Assembly (NCBI GenBank): GCA_038496445.1
Contig: JALMLS010000516.1
Location: 372,001 to 436,000, forward strand
Direction: 5' to 3'
Source of the DNA: Trichosphaerium sp. ATCC 40318
Lineage: Eukaryota; Protista; Tubulinea
DNA: 64,000 nucleotides
Shown: positions 14,455 to 44,400 of the stretch, piece after piece
Layout: the number at the start of each line of letters is the position of its first letter
Position numbering within the stretch: the first letter of the stretch is position 1
Position numbers and translations under genes: made by a program
Notes under the pieces: generated by a model
Told to the model about the DNA's origin: nothing
The model's database searches: none
The model's input: only the letters and a program-made list of their open reading frames with translations

Positions 14455-17400
14455 TTACGTTTGATTCTTTGTGCTGCTACGGTCTCTTTTATGTGCTCTT
14501 TGTTCTTTATCCTTTTTCTTTCTACGATGAGCACCTGCTTCTCTGTGCCTCAATCGCTCAGAAAGCATAGATGCTAGGTAATGATAAAACCTTCCAGTCA
14601 TGCCTGGATAATGCTCAAATAGGATATCCAAGAAATAACCTTCTACCATGTATACCTCAGTACCATCCTCCTCTGCTAATACAGAAGCAGATGCTGGCTT
14701 GTTCTCAAGAAACGACATTTCTCCAAAGATGCTATCTACACCACCCGGTTTAATCTTGGCGAGTCGTACCTTCGATGAAGCTTTAGAATAAACAAATTCC
14801 AACTTGTTGATAAAACGCACCGATTTGCCACCCTTGGCCTTTTCTACGCGACATTCGCCCTTGGCAACCTGGTAGATACGTTGTAATTTTTCTCCTTCTT
14901 GGATGATAATTTCATCCTTCTCGTATGTGATGCACTTTGCACCATTAATAACGCGGTCAAAATCTTCGTCACTGAGCATGAGTGAAGATGCCGCTTTTTC
15001 AGCAGTTAAGCCTAAGGAAACATCTTAAATGACAATCCTATCAACTCATTAACGTACTGCTGCTTCTACTGCGTAATTGTGAAGACGATAATTGCTAACA
15101 AGGCGAGTTAGCTTCATGAAAATTTAATGGATTTTTTCGGTCGTACAGACTCAATGGCATCAACTTCTCCTCGAGGTGTGTTTTGACCAGTTCCTGTCTC
15201 TGTTTTAAGTACTTGTAACCACACAGATCTCAAGAATTCAACAGTTTCCGCATTGTCTTCAGTAGCGAAGACATGTGTCTTTGATGAATTTGTGACAATG
15301 TGGAAGTACTTTTCGTGAATAAAGACATCTTTAATATTCTTTAATTTGAATGTTTCCTAAAACGGTAATCCAGTTAAAAAAAAGCAAGCTTATTTGGAAG
15401 CAAACTACAAATATACCTTGACTCGGATACCGAACACCTTGGCGTCAAAACAGACGTATGATTGGAATATAAACAATACGCCATGTCGCAACCTTCCTTT
15501 TTGTTTCATGGTACAGCTCTTCTCTACGAGACATTATTAGAATGCCGTCACAAGAATAGAATGACTTTGAAACAAAATTAAATCGGAAAGTAGAGACATA
15601 CCACGAATAAGGAGTTGGTCCCGTGGTATATTAAACCGTTTACAAAGTTTAGAATCCTTAGAAGTGCCGTCCTCTTCAGCTTGCTCTGGCTTATCAGTCT
15701 CATCTTTCCGTACCTTATTACCAGATTTACTGCTCAAGTTTCTTAGCCGCTCTGCGAGCTATAAAACACAAGTTAGTATGGCTACACTTGACTGTACCTA
15801 AATGACAATAGTAGTTACCTTGAGGGCTAGAATGCGATTTAATTTTTCAGAGACTATTGGGTTTGTTTGACACAATTTTAGTACAAAGTCGGCCTCCATC
15901 ACCCACAGTTCCATTGTTTCTGCAGCAACAATGGAAGCTGTAACTTTACCCTTTTTGCCCAGCATCGACATTTCGCCAAACATTTGGTTTGGACCCATCG
16001 TAGCAAGCGCGACATTTTTACCATTTATCATCTTTTCTACGCGCACTTTACCAGCTTTAACCCTGAATAACCTATCATTAACACTCCCAGATTCCAAAAT
16101 CTGGTCTCCTTTTTTAAGGGGAACGACAGTAGCGCCTAAATAAAATTAAAAAAAAACCCAGAAAGAACTCAAGTGGGTGACGTGCCTGTCAGTAACAGCT
16201 TCCAATCACGCTGATTGAGCTCTGTTTTACCTTCGTTGGACGCAGTAGCATACATGGAGGCAGATATTTGAGCCATAGTTGCAGCCCTTCTGAAGGCACC
16301 AACAGGTGGTGCAGAACCATCGCCCTCACGCAATCTGGATATTCTCATAATCTCCTTTTCGTCGTCCCACACTTCAGAGTCAGATATAAATGCCTACAAA
16401 AAATCAAGTTAATACAGGGATACCAAAACAAAAGGAAAAGAAAGATAGTGATAGGTGGGTACCTGTATTATAGACACTTCTTTGAAAACGTAGTTACAAG
16501 TGAACCTCTTTACTTTTCTGATACTTGTAGCCATATTAGAGAACTTGTCAAAATTTATCCAACCTTCCTCTGTCTTGCTTGGGGCACAGTCATCCCAAAA
16601 AGTAAAATCTGTCAAAAACACAGCTACAAAAAAAGTGTTATTTCGGTTTGATAAAACAATGGCACTTTACCTATGAAAGGGATGCAAGGAACGCCTTCAG
16701 GGACATCTCCTAACGTAGTTCTATACGTTTTGAAGTTTCTACTGCTCGCCATGAGTTTGGTTACTTCCTCAAAAATTTCTTTTGACTTTTGCGGAACGAC
16801 CTAAATATATACCGTCAACAACAAAATCATTCAACCATCACAACTAAAAAATACGTACAGCCCACGATTCCTTTAATCTACTAATTGGAGAAGAGTGAAG
16901 ACTGGCGAGTACTTCCATAACACCATTAAAGTTATGAAATTCCATAAACACCTAATTTGTACAGTGAGTTCATGTTGTGTTGCGATTACGTTAAAAGCAT
17001 AAATGTAATAGTTTGTACCTTGCAAGTCCTGATAAATTTGTCTATAATCTCACCACGCGCTTCAGGATCTGAGAGTTTTAATATGGTGGTTGTAATCCAG
17101 TGGTACACGCGATTGAAATTAGTAGTCAATTTAGAGACGTTAGGTGCCAATTCTTCGTGATCTTTCTTGTTCCACACTTGATTTAAGAATTCCCTTGGGC
17201 GAACGTTCTTGAATAGCGTAGCCTCCATCAAAGTCATTTGGCGTGCTAACTCTACTGGGTCAAGATCGGCAACAGTAAAATCCTTCTTATTTTTTGGCAC
17301 TATAGATGTAGGAGCGCCTTTTAGATCGGGTTTCGCAGGTTTTTCTACGGCCTGAAAACGTTATTAATAATTTTTAATTGTAAGCAGCACACTAGCAATA

Positions 17401-28684: not shown

Positions 28685-28866
28685 TCTTATTTTGCCACAA
28701 AACAAGTCATTGGCTGCTAAAATTGTATATAGGATGATCGAACGATTGGATAAAAGACAGTTGATGATGATAAAGTGATTAATGTAGGAAAAAAAAAAAG
28801 TAATTGTTTATTAAAAACACAAAATGTACATTTCCTTATTCAGCTATCCCTCTTTATGAGACGTAT

Positions 28867-31180
28867 CTACAGTGTAGAGCTGTTTCTGGTAGCTGGCCTT
28901 GTAGATCCTGTTGTGCCAGTGTAATGGCGGGATAGAATTAAAGTAGGAATCATGAGGGGTGTTACAGCAGTGATAGTGAGAGTTAAAACACCTGCTGCCA
29001 CAATGTAGAACTCTTGCAAATACTGCTTGTTTGGAATACCAATTAACAGACTCGCAAACAGTAGAGCTAGGCACACATTAGCAAAACCAGTTACATGGGT
29101 ACTGCGTGTGGGTAGGAACACGTACAAAATACCATGGAGTTGTAAATGGATAGATTCACATATTTCTGATCCACAGATTTAAAGTCTGACGCTACTTTGC
29201 GCACTGTGAAAGCAAGCCAGCCAAAAGCTATCAGTAATGCCATTTTGGTGGCGGCCGAGATGAATCCAAAGTATTTGTTAATGTCACAGACGTCATCAAT
29301 CGTATCGAATCTAGTTATCAAGTCAGCCAACCGACAGCAAAAATAAGCAATGGTACCTTTCAGAGACTTGCTTTGAGAGGGGTACAGGAGGGGCGATGAC
29401 TTGCCACAAGATCAAAAACACCACTTCAACAAGGGTGAAGCCAAGCACAATCTTGGCAAGTAAGCCATCGCGTATTGCAAAGACTTTGAGTGTTTGGTTG
29501 TTGAAGAGAACGGACAAACGCCAAATCTTAACAAGTGGTCCAATGTACGCCTGTGATAAGTGGTCAGTCACCACTCTAGAGAGGCGCAAATTTTATGTAT
29601 AGCACGTACCAACATGAAACCAATGCTAATAACCCAAATCCTGAGTGCACAGGTTGTTGCAGTCGGTTTACCGATCCAAAAGAATATTGACGATACCATC
29701 AATACGAATCCTGCAAGCGACAATACGCTAAACCAGAATCCAGCCTTCTTTTTTATCATCTTGGTTTCGCGAATGATGATAACCAAAATGAGAAGTGTGA
29801 TGATTGTAACTATGACCAATACAGCAATAAAAACTACGATAAAGACGCCAGCACGATCGAACTTTACCCACCGCTAAGGATAAAGATGTTAATAAAGCTG
29901 ACAATGCTAAACCTGTGCATACCTCAATTTTTGCACCTATTACATCACAGTTTTCGCCTTCCCAGCCAATTGAGCACATACAAACAGATGTATTTTCAAT
30001 CGAGCGACACACACCGTTCTCTTGGTTGCAAGATTTCAAGCAGCGCTCCTCATCATTGTCAAAAGTGCCTAGCTGATCAAGTAGAGAAAAGACCTCTCTG
30101 TAGTTCAGCGGGTACGTCCATTTTTCATATTTGCCACTGATTGCGGCCGTACTATTGGACTTGATATCAAACAGCGCAGCTATCACTATTCTACACCAAT
30201 ATAACAGTTAGGACTATGTTGCTGCAACAGCATAAAAAAAAAAAAGAAATAGTAGGTTGTACCGAATATCTATGTCATCTTCAGCGGATTGGCTAGCTGC
30301 AAAAGGCCACTCTGGGTAGAGCCTGGTGGTGTGCGGAAAAGGAAAACCATCCAAATTTTGTGAATTGAATACACTGACACGGCCGTATGCTGGCAAGTAG
30401 TCGGGATTGCTTGCAACGAAGCGCTCCAGCAAGTCCGTACGCACAAAACCAACATCGGCCACACCATCAAGGACGTTCTTGGCTATTAGGTTTTGGTTGT
30501 ACACAAACGTAATATTGAGGGCATCTACATCAACGCCATTATCTAGTAGGTATCCAATTTGCATTTGGTATGCGCCTAGACCATCTGGACTGACGGCGTG
30601 TATAGTTGCTGATTGTAGATGCTCCAAGGTTGTAATGTTGTTCTCCTCCATGGTCATTATCACGCCTCCAAACTGAGTGAGTGCGTGGCCTTGGCGAAGA
30701 TTCACAAGGGTGGCGACACGCGACAACGAGTGCTTGATCTGTGAAAAACAAACGTTTTTTAGCGTCATGGTCAATGTATCTCAAAAAGAATGTGCAGGTA
30801 ACGGCCTTGCGCTAACTTACCTCCATCTGCATGTAGTGGCTTGGGTTCGTAATAACAAAGTCGACAATGCCTTCACCTACTGCATTGTCCAAATCATCCC
30901 AACCAAGCGCCGCAATAGAGAAAGTATGTGCCACTCCAAAAAATTGTGCAGAAACATCTTGCAAATACTCCGCTGTTGCTGCCCATTGCGCTATAGTGTC
31001 GTCTACACCTCTTATAGCTAAGACTCCTAAAAAAGACAAGAATTATGAGCAGGTTTTTACATATTTTACAATGATGCGCATACCTATTGTAAAATGCTGA
31101 GGCGTCGTTTGAAAGCACTGCGATCCAAAAATACACAAACACACCAGCAGCCCCGTAAACAACGCATTACCTCCGTACAT
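28867..31180 (-). CDS. Class C (GABA-B-like) GPCR with PhnD/TtrS-type binding ectodomain and EGF-like linker
   Basis: Signal peptide; GVLAIRG..W, FVITNPS, FGGVI, GFVRTDLLE, TRLYPEWPFAA; CMCSIGWEGENC; 7TM_3 motifs CALRIW, LVKIWRL..LFNN, LLIAFGWLAFTVRKV, NLSIYN. Confidence 0.88.
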
Positions 31181-41449: not shown

Positions 41450-44400
41450 ATGAGTCTTGCTTTGTTTATTACAGGCTTGGTGCTCATGTTAATAACAGTC
41501 ATTGTTTCAGTGTTTCTGTGGGCATCAGTGCTCGGCTATATTACTTCTACGCTGTTACGGTGGCTGTGGGTTAAAAACGGACAATACATCAATATAAGTG
41601 CGTAGTATGTGGTATTCTATTGGTTTATGACGTATTAGGTGCTATCAGGCATGTAAATCGACAAATGACAATCCCTTTTTTTTTGTTTTGTAACGTTACG
41701 CCCTATCTGACACCTCGAAAGCTTGTCGCCTCTAGGTGGTACATTACAGTTCAGAGGACTTACGTATGCCACGCAAGATGCTATGTTGCGTGTAGTGGAT
41801 GGCTCGATAACTGTGCGTTGGTGGGTGCGTGAGGCAAGACTCAAATCAACTGTACGTGTGGTTAGCGTGTATGCTCGCTCATTGTTTTTTGTTTTCCCCA
41901 GTCTCGTTTTGCTGTGGCTCTCAATGGCGTAGAGTACTACATGTACAATGCAACGGGGAGGTATGCCGAGGTAAACGCCAAAGTCCGGCAAATGGGACGA
42001 GCTACCAAACCGACTAGAAACGCGGATGGTAACCACGGTTTAAAGCACGACGGCACGTTGGACACAGACACTGAAATAGAGCTGGATGCAACCCAAAGTT
42101 TACTGGACGAGGGTGATGATGGCACTGGTGCGCCTCTGCCTTCGAACTATGTAAGGCCGTGGTACATGACATTCGCACCTACAATTCATGTTATAGTGAA
42201 CAGCGGAGCGATTGTCATTGGAAATCCAGCTCTTCCAAACGTACTTCAAATCAAGTTCAAGAAAGCAAACGGTCGGTATGGCGTTAAGGATGCTACATAC
42301 CCAGTGCTGGATTACTACCAAACAACATACTCTTTTACGTTGGAAAAGGCAGCCATCCGTTGTTATCCCAACTTGGACGCTGCACAGCTTCGATCCGCTT
42401 CTCAATACACGCTAACAACGGCTGTTGATGCCAGTGCTGTATGGCAATCCTTCAAACTGATTTACAAAGATCTCAAATTTCAATTTTTGGATTGGAGTCC
42501 GGACATACTCGATCAAGAACCCAACATTGAGCAACCTCGTGACCATGAGGAATATGCAACTGATCCACACTTCCTAGACTGTCCACGGCTCCAAATAGTG
42601 GCTGCATTCGACAACCCAGGCCCACAACAGCAGTCTCACAAGTACGATCCTACGACAGCTCCACTGTGGCACGTCAACATTGAGAGTGCTGCAGACACAA
42701 CTATAATTTATGGTCCGTGGGCTGATAGACAACGTTCCATGATTACAAAATTCTTCTTCCCGCCGACGTGGTCGTCTAAGGCGCCATATAAGTTCAAATC
42801 AGGTGCACCCAGACCGTTTGCAACCTATCACTTCAAATGGTACGTATGTGTCAAATCAGTTGAAATGAAAATCCAAGATTGAATGATTGAGGTACCCCTG
42901 GTAATATTAAAAATTCTTTTTTTACTGTAGGACATTTCGCGTTGGCACTGATTTATGTTTAACCATGCCTTTTCGGCAGGCTTTAGAAGACGCTTTTACT
43001 GAAGAACACGTTGGGACTTTAACGCTAAAGCTGAAGGAACCAAAGCTTCAGTATTTTCAAGTATGGCTTTTTATCGTGTGTAATCACCACAGTCAGCACT
43101 GCATTGTATTCGCGTATTGCCGGTTATTAATGCCATCTTTAGGAATTGGAGGCAATGGATGCTGCTCCGTTGAACACTAAAATCAGTTTGGAGTCGCAAG
43201 AGGCATCTATATCTTCATCTGCAGGCGACTTCGTCTTTGGGACCGCAAAAAAGTTTAAGGTGCCAGCATCATTTTAACTTAGATTGCAAGCGTACTAACA
43301 CTCAAAAAAGTTTGCGTGGTCGATGGTGTCTCCGTTAGTATGGAATCATGTCCATGAATGGACTTTTAATGTCAAGTATGCTTTACTAATTTTTGTCACG
43401 TGTATTGAACGCCCAGTCTCGCTTTTCTGCACTGCTCATTTTTTTTGCATTGTAGGTTGATGAGCGCTACCTTGACACCCCTCGCAGATCATACAGCCCT
43501 GATATCCGATTTATTGAGTGATTGGTTTGTTGGCGACGCTACGGAGTTGTCAAAATTTGTGCCAGTCGTATACAAGTTCAACTTTAGTCTCTTGAAGGGT
43601 TGCTCTGTTTATCTAAATGTAAATGATGAGAACATTATTGACGACCACTTGGTATCATCCAAGAAGAATGGTTAGTGTTTTTGGTTGTGGTAATTGAGAA
43701 TTATAACTTTTTGTGTGTAGACTACCTCCTGCTTCAAACCAACAAAATAAGCGTTCAATTGTCCATGGATTCTACAGCCTATCGACCAACTCAAAAATTT
43801 GTACAGTTCTCTTTAAAGGTAAGCGTTGCATGTGTCTTCAACGCGCTAAGCTGGTCGTTCTGTAGCAAGCTGGTTTCAAGGTGAACACGTTGTTTTCGCA
43901 GTCCAGCCTCATACACTCGCATATTCATCAAGATCACCAACTCTATGGTGTTCCGTTCGTAGAGTGCGATGCCAAAGGCATAGTAAGCGGTGTATACAAT
44001 TACTTTTCTCAAGGCACGAGTTTTTGCTTTTTGGTTGAAAATCAGTCTCTAATAATATGCACAGTTGATGTACAAAATGTAAATACAATGGGTAAGTACG
44101 CTCACGTGTACACAAACTTTTAGGTGATTTTTTTTAACCTGTTGCACTACAGATTTAGATGTGACAGCAAGCAAAGTGTCAATTACACTTTTCGGCTTTG
44201 TCCTTCCTGCTCTAATGAATTTGTGGCAAAACTATTTTGGATCACACAAGAGGTTCCTCAGCATGGATGATTGGCGCAATGGCAAACCCCGACCTACCCC
44301 TCCAAGTAGCCCATCTAACAACTTCGAGCTGAATTTAGCACTTGATATTGATGAGCCGTCTGTGGTGTTGCCAGAGCGTCTATATTCGATGGAAACAGTT

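Follow-up and report, generated by a model that had tools for sequence, protein, structure and literature searches.

How a bacterial binding protein can be recruited to eukaryotic signalling is shown, as a textbook case, by the class C receptors. Outside animals, the type of ectodomain that they carry is known to differ (PMC3251606). Papers of 2012 and 2014 described class C receptors whose ectodomain is OpuAC, PBP_like_2, SBP_bac_1 or LysR_substrate, all from the same clan of Pfam, PBP (PMC3251606; PMC3971589), and in fungi and protists the PBP-clan ectodomains also include Bmp and SBP_bac_3 (Krishnan et al. 2012, PMC3251606; de Mendoza et al. 2014, PMC3971589). The protist receptor described here shares the logic of these published receptors, in which a bacterial-type two-lobed binding protein is placed ahead of 7tm_3. 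Its nearest feature neighbours among the Atlas clusters were SBP_bac_3 + 7tm_3, OpuAC + 7tm_3 (diatoms) and PBP_like_2 + EGF-like + 7tm_3 (chytrids), and the chytrid set has an EGF-like stalk in common with it. However, it differs from the published set in that its binding domain is PF12974, which is not named in the main text of PMC3251606 or PMC3971589, and in that the bacterial domains most closely related to it serve as sensor inputs, not as transporter proteins. A full-text literature search that combined PF12974 or Phosphonate-bd with 7tm_3, PF00003 or GPCR returned no description of such a receptor; of PMC3971589 it covered the main text, and species-specific architectures may be listed in the supplement. 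The PF12974 version would be one more instance of a published pattern, in which class C receptors of protists exchange one bacterial-type binding domain for another. Since class C receptors with other PBP-clan ectodomains are published (PMC3251606, PMC3971589), this kind of system is already described, and the suggestion of an undescribed signalling system made in a preliminary description of the locus was dropped. For the same reason, its contrast with the Venus flytrap of animals and the BMP domain of Dictyostelium was incomplete.

Among known receptors, the 7TM motifs and cysteines of human GABA-B2 (PDB 7c7q, 6uo8 and further entries) align with those of the protist receptor. The two differ in the ectodomain, which is an ANF_receptor-type flytrap (type I) in GABA-B and a PhnD-like domain of type II here; in the stalk, which is EGF-like in the protist receptor, GABA-B having none that is cysteine-rich; in the tail, which is a long coiled coil in GABA-B and only ~20 aa here; and in TM7, where the protist receptor has Pro-Thr in place of Pro-Lys. 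In the bacterial PF12974 signalling proteins (TtrS/ThsS-type kinases, cyanobacterial MCPs, GGDEF/EAL, HD-GYP and PP2C proteins) the domain is likewise N-terminal and directly before the membrane, but the output is a kinase, chemoreceptor or cyclase rather than a eukaryotic 7TM, and the spliceosomal introns seen here set the protist gene apart. The closest solved folds are those of ArrX, AioX, PtxB, HtxB and PhnD (TM by target up to ~0.8, profile scores up to 66 bits), of which ArrX and AioX also signal, reporting to a kinase (PMC8050422 for AioX). Nevertheless, the sequence identity to these five proteins is only 10–16%, they are soluble proteins and not receptor domains, and their anion ligands are not conserved here. 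The giant receptors of Paulinella micropora (EukProt EP00808 P003810, P016708, P021090, P029346, P006277 and P008332) combine PF12974, a cysteine-rich stalk and 7tm_3 as in our protein; they differ in having three to eight tandem PBP domains, an Ephrin_rec_like stalk, a length of 1740–3279 aa and the Pro-Lys motif kept in TM7.

The gene (28867..31180) lies on the minus strand of the window, i.e., the whole 64,000-nt stretch of DNA that was analysed, with ATG at 31180–31178 and TAG at 28869–28867, exactly as located before. A manual splice model gave an open CDS of 1890 nt, encoding 629 aa, in eight exons separated by seven introns of 46–82 nt, every one of which is bounded by GT..AG. The transcript contig L001 (1951 nt) aligns in blocks that break at the readable predicted exon ends, including both sides of intron 2, and its ORF (P0161) is 99.8% identical to model residues 7–629. 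L001 spans the sensor, the EGF-like module and the 7TM with all introns removed. The joints of introns 3–7 are visible in RNA-derived contigs and come from three runs, and one RNA contig has at 31029 a loose end of 10 nt that continues into the last bases of exon 1, which fits intron 1. All seven introns are confirmed by L001 and the RNA contig joints, and the sensor and the 7TM lie on one mRNA, not on separate transcripts.

Exon 1 (31084..31180; L001 block 31163–31083) contains the start codon and a signal-like hydrophobic segment found by hydropathy at residues 1–24, with a core at residues 7–22 (31162–31115); the segment is presumably cleaved off. The N-terminal lobe of the PBP domain is encoded by exon 2 (30821..31026; L001 block end at 30821), which covers PF12974 profile positions 10–64 and gave a local match of 32.4 bits to the TtrS model. 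Exon 3 (30263..30738) encodes the bulk of the domain, 158 aa, and reached 58.5 bits against PF12974 on its own; the corresponding L001 block, 30740–30263, has intron 2 removed. Exon 4 (29923..30190; RNA joints 30190/30263 and 29873/29923) encodes the last ~45 aa of the PBP domain and the EGF-like module, the latter with sub-threshold EGF matches. Exon 5 (29610..29873; 7tm_3 49.4 bits) starts just upstream of TM1, at the junction of ectodomain and membrane part, and encodes TM1, TM2 and the start of TM3. The remainder of TM3 with K-x-W-R, intracellular loop 2 and TM4 are found in exon 6 (29357..29550; 7tm_3 31.7 bits; GABA-B2 alignment), which is joined to exon 5 at 29549/29609 (cut +1) and to exon 7 at 29310/29357. 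Exon 7 (29126..29310; 7tm_3 16.6 bits; GABA-B2 alignment) carries extracellular loop 2 with its Cys, TM5, intracellular loop 3 and the start of TM6 (D-Q-K-Y..S-I-Y-N), and two RNA runs contain its joint to exon 8 (29066/29126). Based on the splice model and alignments, exon 8 (28867..29066) encodes the remainder of TM6, TM7 with I-P-T-L and not P-K-L, a tail of ~20 aa and the stop codon. It is followed by a 3′ untranslated region (28789..28866), which is covered by L001 block 29066–28789 at 100% identity. Exon 7 read straight through runs into a stop, and two candidate introns of 20–24 nt were rejected. The reading frame of exon 8 follows from the splicing out of intron 7, a GT..AG intron of 59 nt (29125–29067) that is confirmed by RNA and gives a GABA-B-like TM6 spacing. 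There were no paralogues within the window, a paralogue (L002) being encoded elsewhere, and an Rfam scan of the window gave no match.

In the full-length protein, Pfam profiles identified Phosphonate-bd (PF12974; 87.0 bits, cut-off 27, profile positions 1–218 of 242) and 7tm_3 (PF00003; 115.7 bits, cut-off 33.5, profile positions 7–241 of 251), and the scoring of single exons agrees with this result. The same scan gave no ANF_receptor match, the ectodomain being PF12974 instead, and no kinase domains (HisKA, HATPase). The PBP domain comprises residues 30–301 (30067..31093) and is split by introns 1–3. It is followed by the EGF-like module, Cys310–Cys341 (30042–29947), which is under every Pfam cut-off (EGF_Teneurin 20.0 against 24.3; EGF 16.0 against 21.5). 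Nonetheless, its six cysteines as read from the sequence have the canonical EGF spacing, including C-x-C-x2-G-W-x4-C, which we take to be the PROSITE signature of EGF. The seven-transmembrane region occupies residues 357–609 (28930..29852), and hydropathy and the AF2 model place seven TM helices after the N-terminal signal-like segment, which suggests a seven-TM topology with the N-terminus outside the cell. The AF2 confidence was very high for the PBP domain (pLDDT ~97) and low for the 7TM and the linker (pLDDT 36–80). These results bear out the main content of the preliminary description, which had read one spliced gene with a signal peptide, a PhnD-type domain, an EGF-like repeat and a class C 7TM; all of the motifs quoted there (GVLAIRG, W..TAEYL, VDFVITNPS, FGGVI, GLGAYQMQ, GFVRTDLLE and TRLYPEWPFAA) are present.

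A Foldseek search of the PDB with the ectodomain model confirmed a PhnD-family fold, with E values down to 2.6e-12 and TM by target up to ~0.8 for the best of ArrX, PtxB, HtxB, AioX and PhnD. The top 40 matches were all PhnD-family binders of arsenate, phosphite, arsenite, hypophosphite or phosphonate. Single-sequence PDB searches with the ectodomain produced noise-level matches, including a spurious one to a thioester protein, and a profile was needed; the profile search gave 66 bits for PtxB and 49 bits for ArrX. Over ~270 residues the ectodomain is 33–43% identical to the input domains of MCP, HK, GGDEF/EAL, HD-GYP and PP2C proteins from many phyla, and exon 3 alone had 2542 matches (50%-identity clusters) at E ≤ 1e-3 in a protein library. 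In 30 bacterial homologues, 60 columns show a conservation of at least 85%; the protist domain has the same residue in 52 of them, and the signature I-G-V-L-A, T-N-P, F-G-G-V, V-R-T-D and L-Y-P-E-W-P is common to the ectodomain and the bacterial sensors. The TtrS equivalog model NF040750 matched only locally (32.4 and 27.9 bits, cut-off 750), and the nearest proteins were mixed. Judged by these scores, the ectodomain is a homologue of the TtrS sensor domain and not a TtrS orthologue: of the bacterial affinity proposed earlier, the PhnD-like sensor kinship stands and the specific assignment to TtrS falls.

To our knowledge, TtrS and ThsS are the only characterised sensor-kinase members of the family, and both sense sulfur oxyanions. 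In the transporters, the oxyanion is bound by a hinge Tyr, a Ser-Thr-Ser segment and a His (PMC5700983). According to the profile alignment, by which alone the pocket residues were mapped, the Tyr, Ser-Thr-Ser and His of PtxB/PhnD are replaced here by Phe, Gly-Leu-Gly and Gln. The bacterial sensor-type homologues lack the transporter residues as well, and the position of the PtxB His is Asn-Gln in clade A eukaryotes and variable in bacteria. Aromatic residues align to the hinge Tyr of PtxB and to the position that we presume, by our own assignment, to be that of its capping Tyr. Because the anion ligands of PtxB/PhnD are replaced and the pocket chemistry differs, an oxyanion ligand is not readable from the sequence, and the small-oxyanion sensing proposed earlier was a guess. 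Family precedent may still suggest an inorganic anion or a small organic one, such as an oxyanion of sulfur, phosphorus or arsenic, as a guess that falls well short of an even chance.

The best solved relative of the 7TM is GABA-B2 (E 1.8e-14). The Cys residues of TM3 and extracellular loop 2, K-x-W-R in TM3 and D-x-K-Y...S-x-Y-N in TM6 align with human GABA-B2, and the TM3 Lys/TM6 Asp pair is kept. The roles of this pair and of the conserved Cys residues in class C receptors have been reported (PMC3727952). The Pro-Lys motif of TM7 is absent: the protein and its paralogue have I-P-T-L, in which the Pro is kept and the Lys is replaced by Thr, whereas the Paulinella relatives have P-K-L. The cytoplasmic tail is short, about 20 residues.

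Based on the above results, we suggest that the locus encodes a functional, expressed cell-surface class C (glutamate/GABA-B-like) receptor with a type II PhnD-family (PF12974) ligand-binding ectodomain of the bacterial input-domain subtype, a reading that we consider somewhat better than evenly supported. In such a receptor, a small soluble ligand would be trapped between the two PBP lobes. Closure of the hinge, probably in a receptor dimer, may then be relayed to TM1 and the 7TM by way of the EGF-like module, which would be rigid and disulfide-bonded. The 7TM bundle, with its GABA-B-type TM3 Lys/TM6 Asp pair, would in turn activate a heterotrimeric G protein. A precedent for this mechanism is found in the class C receptors whose ectodomains come from other families of the PBP clan (PMC3251606, PMC3971589).

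The paralogue L002 from the same sample has the same architecture at 62% identity, and proteins with PF12974 and 7tm_3 were also found in Chrysoparadoxa, in Paulinella (with tandem PBPs) and in metagenomes (uncultured eukaryotes; P0012 and P0047). The Paulinella proteins are collinear with the protist receptor from their last PBP domain to TM7 at ~26% identity. Word-index homologue searches recovered no protein of this architecture apart from the paralogue; Chrysoparadoxa, P0012 and P0047 escaped them, so their blanks understate the distribution. In the PBP tree, the gene belongs to a eukaryote-only clade (99/93) with Chrysoparadoxa (a stramenopile), dinoflagellates and uncultured eukaryotes, and this clade joins 17 bacterial sensor domains and the short unassigned P0115 (97/92). 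The PBP domains of Paulinella group apart from it, together with an Isochrysis cluster (100/99). The eukaryotes thus fall into two clades in the free tree; an AU test does not reject a single clade (p 0.40). In the set examined, the closest 7TM outside the source organism is that of Paulinella, closer than those of the PBP-clade neighbours P0047 and P0011. Given that the 7TM points to Paulinella and the PBP domain to P0047 and P0011, no single fusion history was read. This discordant kinship was counted against the main reading, together with the replaced PtxB/PhnD ligands, Pro-Thr in TM7, the tail of ~20 residues and the low pLDDT of the 7TM and linker.

The sensor domain would have come from bacteria long ago and is today part of a eukaryotic family with members in stramenopiles, dinoflagellates, Paulinella and a haptophyte. 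The fusion of a bacterial module to a G-protein receptor, as first proposed, is retained, and it is not peculiar to this genome, as shown by the eukaryote-only clade and by the relatives in Chrysoparadoxa, Paulinella and metagenomes. Since the 80 best species-representative bacterial loci are spread over many phyla at 33–43% identity, no bacterial donor could be named. The transfer is not recent and the domain is not a contaminant, because introns lie inside the domain, GC3 is equal in the sensor-coding and 7TM parts (0.464 and 0.468) and the clade is eukaryote-only (99/93). The preliminary description had already used the introns as an argument against contamination, and three of them, all RNA-supported, do interrupt the sensor-coding part. 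Bacterial contamination, a gene model that wrongly joins two genes or a very recent transfer confined to this genome could be brought up for a family that is typically prokaryotic and whose best non-eukaryotic matches are bacterial. Such an artefact has next to no probability, since the RNA evidence, i.e., the 1951-nt contig spanning all three modules with introns removed and the joints from three runs, already refutes it; the spliceosomal introns in the sensor, the GC3 values, the distance to the best bacterial matches and the eukaryote-only clade also stand against it.

More serious is the possibility that the receptor architecture is correct and the ligand is an organic metabolite (an organic acid, sulfonate, osmolyte or prey- or bacteria-derived compound) instead of an inorganic oxyanion. 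The replacement of the PtxB/PhnD ligand residues and the variability at the PtxB His position are in line with it, and the very large size of the bacterial sensor subfamily (the 2542 clusters) and its many different outputs suggest many ligands. On the other hand, all of the top-ranked solved relatives bind a small phosphorus or arsenic oxyanion, TtrS and ThsS sense sulfur oxyanions, and aromatic residues are present at the hinge and presumed capping positions, so we hold an organic ligand to be possible but rather doubtful. It may also be that the protein does not signal through heterotrimeric G proteins and that its 7TM anchors it in the membrane, acts as a scaffold or works in the manner of a transceptor or adhesion module. 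Pro-Thr in TM7, the very short C-terminal tail and the dinoflagellate proteins, in which the PBP domain and stalk sit on a TRP-like/TIR multi-pass region, would fit this. However, a 7tm_3 score of 115.7 bits with all seven helices, the GABA-B2 pair and cysteines kept, and a 7TM conserved at 62% identity in the paralogue make it improbable. The loss of the canonical ligand residues of the transporter-type relatives could finally mean that the ectodomain is a degenerate pseudo-sensor that binds no ligand and serves dimerisation or structure only. This is very unlikely, as bacterial sensor-type homologues lack the same residues and the protein agrees with them in 52 of their 60 conserved columns, the confidence of the fold model is very high, and two paralogues and the distant eukaryotic relatives keep the same signature.

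The gene adds PF12974 to the binding-protein families of class C receptors, and the bacterial proteins to which its domain is closest already act as sensors in signalling and not in transport. On different membrane outputs, the domain is found again in stramenopiles, Rhizaria, dinoflagellates and a haptophyte, which makes it a tractable case for studying the passage of sensor modules between signalling of the two-component type and of the G-protein type, and which small molecules marine protists sense. A more far-reaching proposal, which we regard as unlikely, would be that these proteins include the first eukaryotic GPCR family for inorganic or small redox-active anions (thiosulfate, tetrathionate, phosphite, phosphonates, arsenic oxyanions). 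The sensor domain would have been acquired once or twice early in SAR/haptophyte evolution and redeployed on a GPCR with a single PBP, on the Paulinella GPCRs with three to eight PBPs and on the TRP-like/TIR proteins of dinoflagellates. If this were true, marine protists would be able to sense nearby bacteria, or the redox chemistry of sulfur or phosphorus, directly. Once a ligand is defined, the eukaryotic family would be de-orphaned, and with it part of a bacterial sensor family that is very large and mostly uncharacterised; without one, the receptor is an incremental addition to a known pattern. Since the ectodomain is compact and confidently modelled, ligand screening is feasible. In dinoflagellates, the PBP domain and a cysteine-rich stalk are placed on a different multi-pass region with weak TRP-like matches and a TIR domain, which indicates that the sensor can work with other outputs.

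The receptor gene lies on the minus strand, with the start ATG at 31180 and the stop codon TAG at 28869-28867, exactly the coordinates of the preliminary description. The splice model was assembled by hand and contains eight exons (31180-31084, 31026-30821, 30738-30263, 30190-29923, 29873-29610, 29550-29357, 29310-29126 and 29066-28867). The seven introns are all GT..AG and 46-82 nt long, and the CDS of 1890 nt is open throughout and encodes 629 aa. Removal of the 59-nt intron 29125-29067 gives TM6 the length seen in GABA-B receptors. Read-through of exon 7 without this last intron was rejected, as it runs into a stop codon.

RNA contigs from three runs join the exons exactly as predicted at introns 3, 4, 5, 6 and 7, and the loose end of an RNA contig across intron 1 agrees with the end of exon 1. 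L001, a JGI-sample transcript contig of 1951 nt, matches the window in blocks whose limits coincide with those predicted exon ends that could be read off, both sides of intron 2 among them; it also reaches 78 nt into the 3′ UTR. Its ORF, P0161 (623 aa), is 99.8% identical to model residues 7-629. Because the RNA joints, L001 and P0161 span both parts, the sensor ectodomain and the 7TM were indeed correctly placed in one gene with a single mRNA; separate transcripts were looked for in the RNA, and the two parts proved to be joined. The RNA evidence excludes an artefact, and we consider the architecture and expression described here nearly certain.

One RNA contig of low depth (2, from run X3) reads 7 nt into intron 2 (30739-30745) and is probably unspliced precursor or residual DNA; in L001 intron 2 is spliced out. 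The sole amino-acid difference between the genome and P0161 over 623 residues, Asn80 (D-L-D-N-A-V; 30884-30886) versus Lys (D-L-D-K-A-V), presumably reflects strain or allele variation.

Based on Pfam annotation of the full-length spliced protein, both Phosphonate-bd (PF12974; 87.0 bits, cut-off 27; per-exon scoring in agreement) and 7tm_3 (115.7 bits, cut-off 33.5) were found above their cut-offs. An N-terminal signal-like segment and seven helices were recognized by hydropathy and in the AF2 model. The EGF-like module is under all Pfam cut-offs and was read from six cysteines in canonical EGF spacing; lying between the PBP and TM1, it takes the position that in animal class C receptors is filled by the cysteine-rich domain. 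The proposed order of signal peptide, PF12974 domain, EGF-like repeat and class C 7TM is thus borne out.

Among solved structures, human GABA-B2 is the best relative of the 7TM (E 1.8e-14), and metabotropic glutamate receptors come next. The receptor shares with GABA-B2 a cysteine in TM3 and another in extracellular loop 2, the K-x-W-R of TM3 and the D-x-K-Y...S-x-Y-N of TM6; the roles of the residues conserved in class C in TM3, loop 2 and TM6 are described in PMC3727952. The Pro-Lys motif of TM7 is replaced by Pro-Thr in the receptor and its paralogue, and the cytoplasmic tail has about 20 residues.

In the AlphaFold2 model of the ectodomain, built on a 48-sequence alignment, PBP residues 21-300 had a pLDDT of about 97. 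The first 40 ranks of a Foldseek search against PDB were all PhnD-family binding proteins. They include ArrX (ligand arsenate), PtxB (phosphite), AioX (arsenite), HtxB (hypophosphite) and PhnD (phosphonates), and the best matches reach a TM by target of about 0.8 at 10-16% identity. The PBP family profile gave 66 bits for PtxB and 49 bits for ArrX. Judged by sequence, the domain is much nearer to bacterial signalling input domains than to these solved binders. An exhaustive search with exon 3 returned 2542 cluster representatives at E<=1e-3; the bacterial matches (about 36-47% identity over exon 3, 33-43% over the whole PBP domain) are N-terminal input domains of methyl-accepting chemotaxis proteins, histidine kinases, GGDEF/EAL, HD-GYP and PP2C proteins. 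The TtrS equivalog model gave local matches only, far below its cut-off (32.4 and 27.9 bits, cut-off 750), so the label "TtrS-type" is right for homology and wrong for orthology.

We suggest the following mechanism. A small ligand would close the two PBP lobes, the movement would be relayed via the EGF-like stalk to the GABA-B-like 7TM, and the latter would activate a G protein. This whole chain seems to us somewhat probable; signalling independent of G proteins, by a 7TM with the GABA-B2 motifs and the altered TM7 motif, is unlikely. It is very improbable that the ectodomain is a pseudo-sensor: of 60 columns with conservation of 85% or more across 30 bacterial homologues, 52 retain the consensus residue in the receptor, which argues that its domain still works in the same way as theirs. 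The transporter-type ligand residues, a hinge Tyr, a Ser-Thr-Ser motif and a His (PMC5700983), are replaced in the alignment by Phe, Gly-Leu-Gly and Gln, so the ligand is not readable from sequence; these residues are missing from the bacterial sensors too. The oxyanion sensing proposed earlier would be a guess from precedent, less likely than not; the rival reading of an organic ligand is about as doubtful.

The architecture also occurs elsewhere. A paralogue, P0002 (62% identity), was found in the same transcriptome sample and is located outside the window, and PF12974 is combined with 7tm_3 in Chrysoparadoxa australica (stramenopile, P0011) and in the environmental proteins P0012 and P0047. 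Six Paulinella micropora proteins of 1740-3279 aa (P0001, P0003, P0004, P0005, P0025, P0135) carry 3-8 tandem PF12974 domains, with Ephrin_rec_like repeats among them, and one 7tm_3 at the C-terminus. The last unit of at least three (P0005, P0025 and P0135) can be aligned with the receptor, starting in the PBP and running into the 7TM or right across it. A GPCR this large with several flytraps seems unusual, and no description of one was found in the literature searched. The same PBP and Ephrin_rec_like stalk without 7tm_3 is present in Symbiodinium and a related cluster including Gymnodinium smaydae (with MMETSP entries: P0008, P0153, P0152, P0040, P0031, P0033) and in an Isochrysis galbana cluster (P0196/P0315). 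In these dinoflagellate and Isochrysis proteins the module is reused with non-GPCR outputs: some Symbiodinium-cluster members have weak TRP (PF06011) matches in a different membrane region, and two proteins of the group match TIR. One Symbiodinium entry carries the automatic name "ttrS, partial".

In a maximum likelihood tree of 80 PBP domains, the receptor and its paralogue fall within a 16-sequence clade, all eukaryotic or nested among eukaryotes (99/93), which joins 17 bacterial sensor domains and P0115, a short sequence without assignment (97/92). Paulinella and Isochrysis form a second clade (100/99). A single eukaryotic clade was not rejected by the AU test (p 0.40), so the ancient acquisition of the sensor may have happened either once or twice. 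At column 209 of alignment A3 (P0161 residue 151, following the conserved Gly of the G-G motif), the eukaryotic clade holding the receptor's PBP has Ala in 8/9 domains and Ser in one; Gly occupies it in 30/30 bacterial rows and most Paulinella/Isochrysis rows, and Ala is likely a shared derived character of that clade. A search of 185,579 species representatives from bacteria and archaea gave best matches of only 33-43% identity, spread over Rhodocyclaceae, Chromatiales, cyanobacteria, Gallionellales, Desulfobulbaceae, Campylobacterota, Myxococcota and others; the bacterial donor therefore cannot be named. The sensor and 7TM parts have almost the same GC3, 0.464 and 0.468 respectively. Of the idea that a bacterial module was grafted onto a GPCR, the bacterial-type domain stands and the recent graft does not; the family consists of old, fully domesticated eukaryotic genes. 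The 7TM is closer to that of Paulinella (E about 1e-16) than to those of P0047 (2e-5) and P0011 (8e-3), an order that disagrees with the PBP tree; repeated domain shuffling may therefore have occurred in the fusion history.

The principle of a bacterial-type binding domain on a class C 7TM is already published. Krishnan et al. 2012 reported Glutamate-family receptors with Bmp, LysR_substrate, PBP_like_2, OpuAC and SBP_bac_1 in fungi and other eukaryotes (PMC3251606), and de Mendoza et al. 2014 found ANF_receptor, OpuAC and Bmp configurations conserved across distant lineages, besides species-specific ones (PMC3971589). Look-alike clusters in the Atlas combine SBP_bac_3 or OpuAC with 7tm_3 (diatoms), or PBP_like_2 and EGF-like with 7tm_3 (chytrids). 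Full-text literature searches found no description of PF12974 with a class C receptor, and no experimental study of any such receptor was found in the literature. The preliminary description was thus sound on the finding itself and on most of its details, and overstated uniqueness and an "undescribed signalling system".

The 64-kb window contains no second receptor copy and no Rfam families. Two of its longer ORFs near the gene have no evident link to the receptor. One, at 14455-14979 (-), encodes a cyclic-nucleotide-binding domain (PF00027, 49.6 bits) and presumably forms one exon of a gene that is larger. The other, at 41914-42882 (+), weakly matches bridge-like lipid-transfer proteins of the BLTP1/Csf1 type in their N-terminal region and probably belongs to a very large gene continuing downstream.
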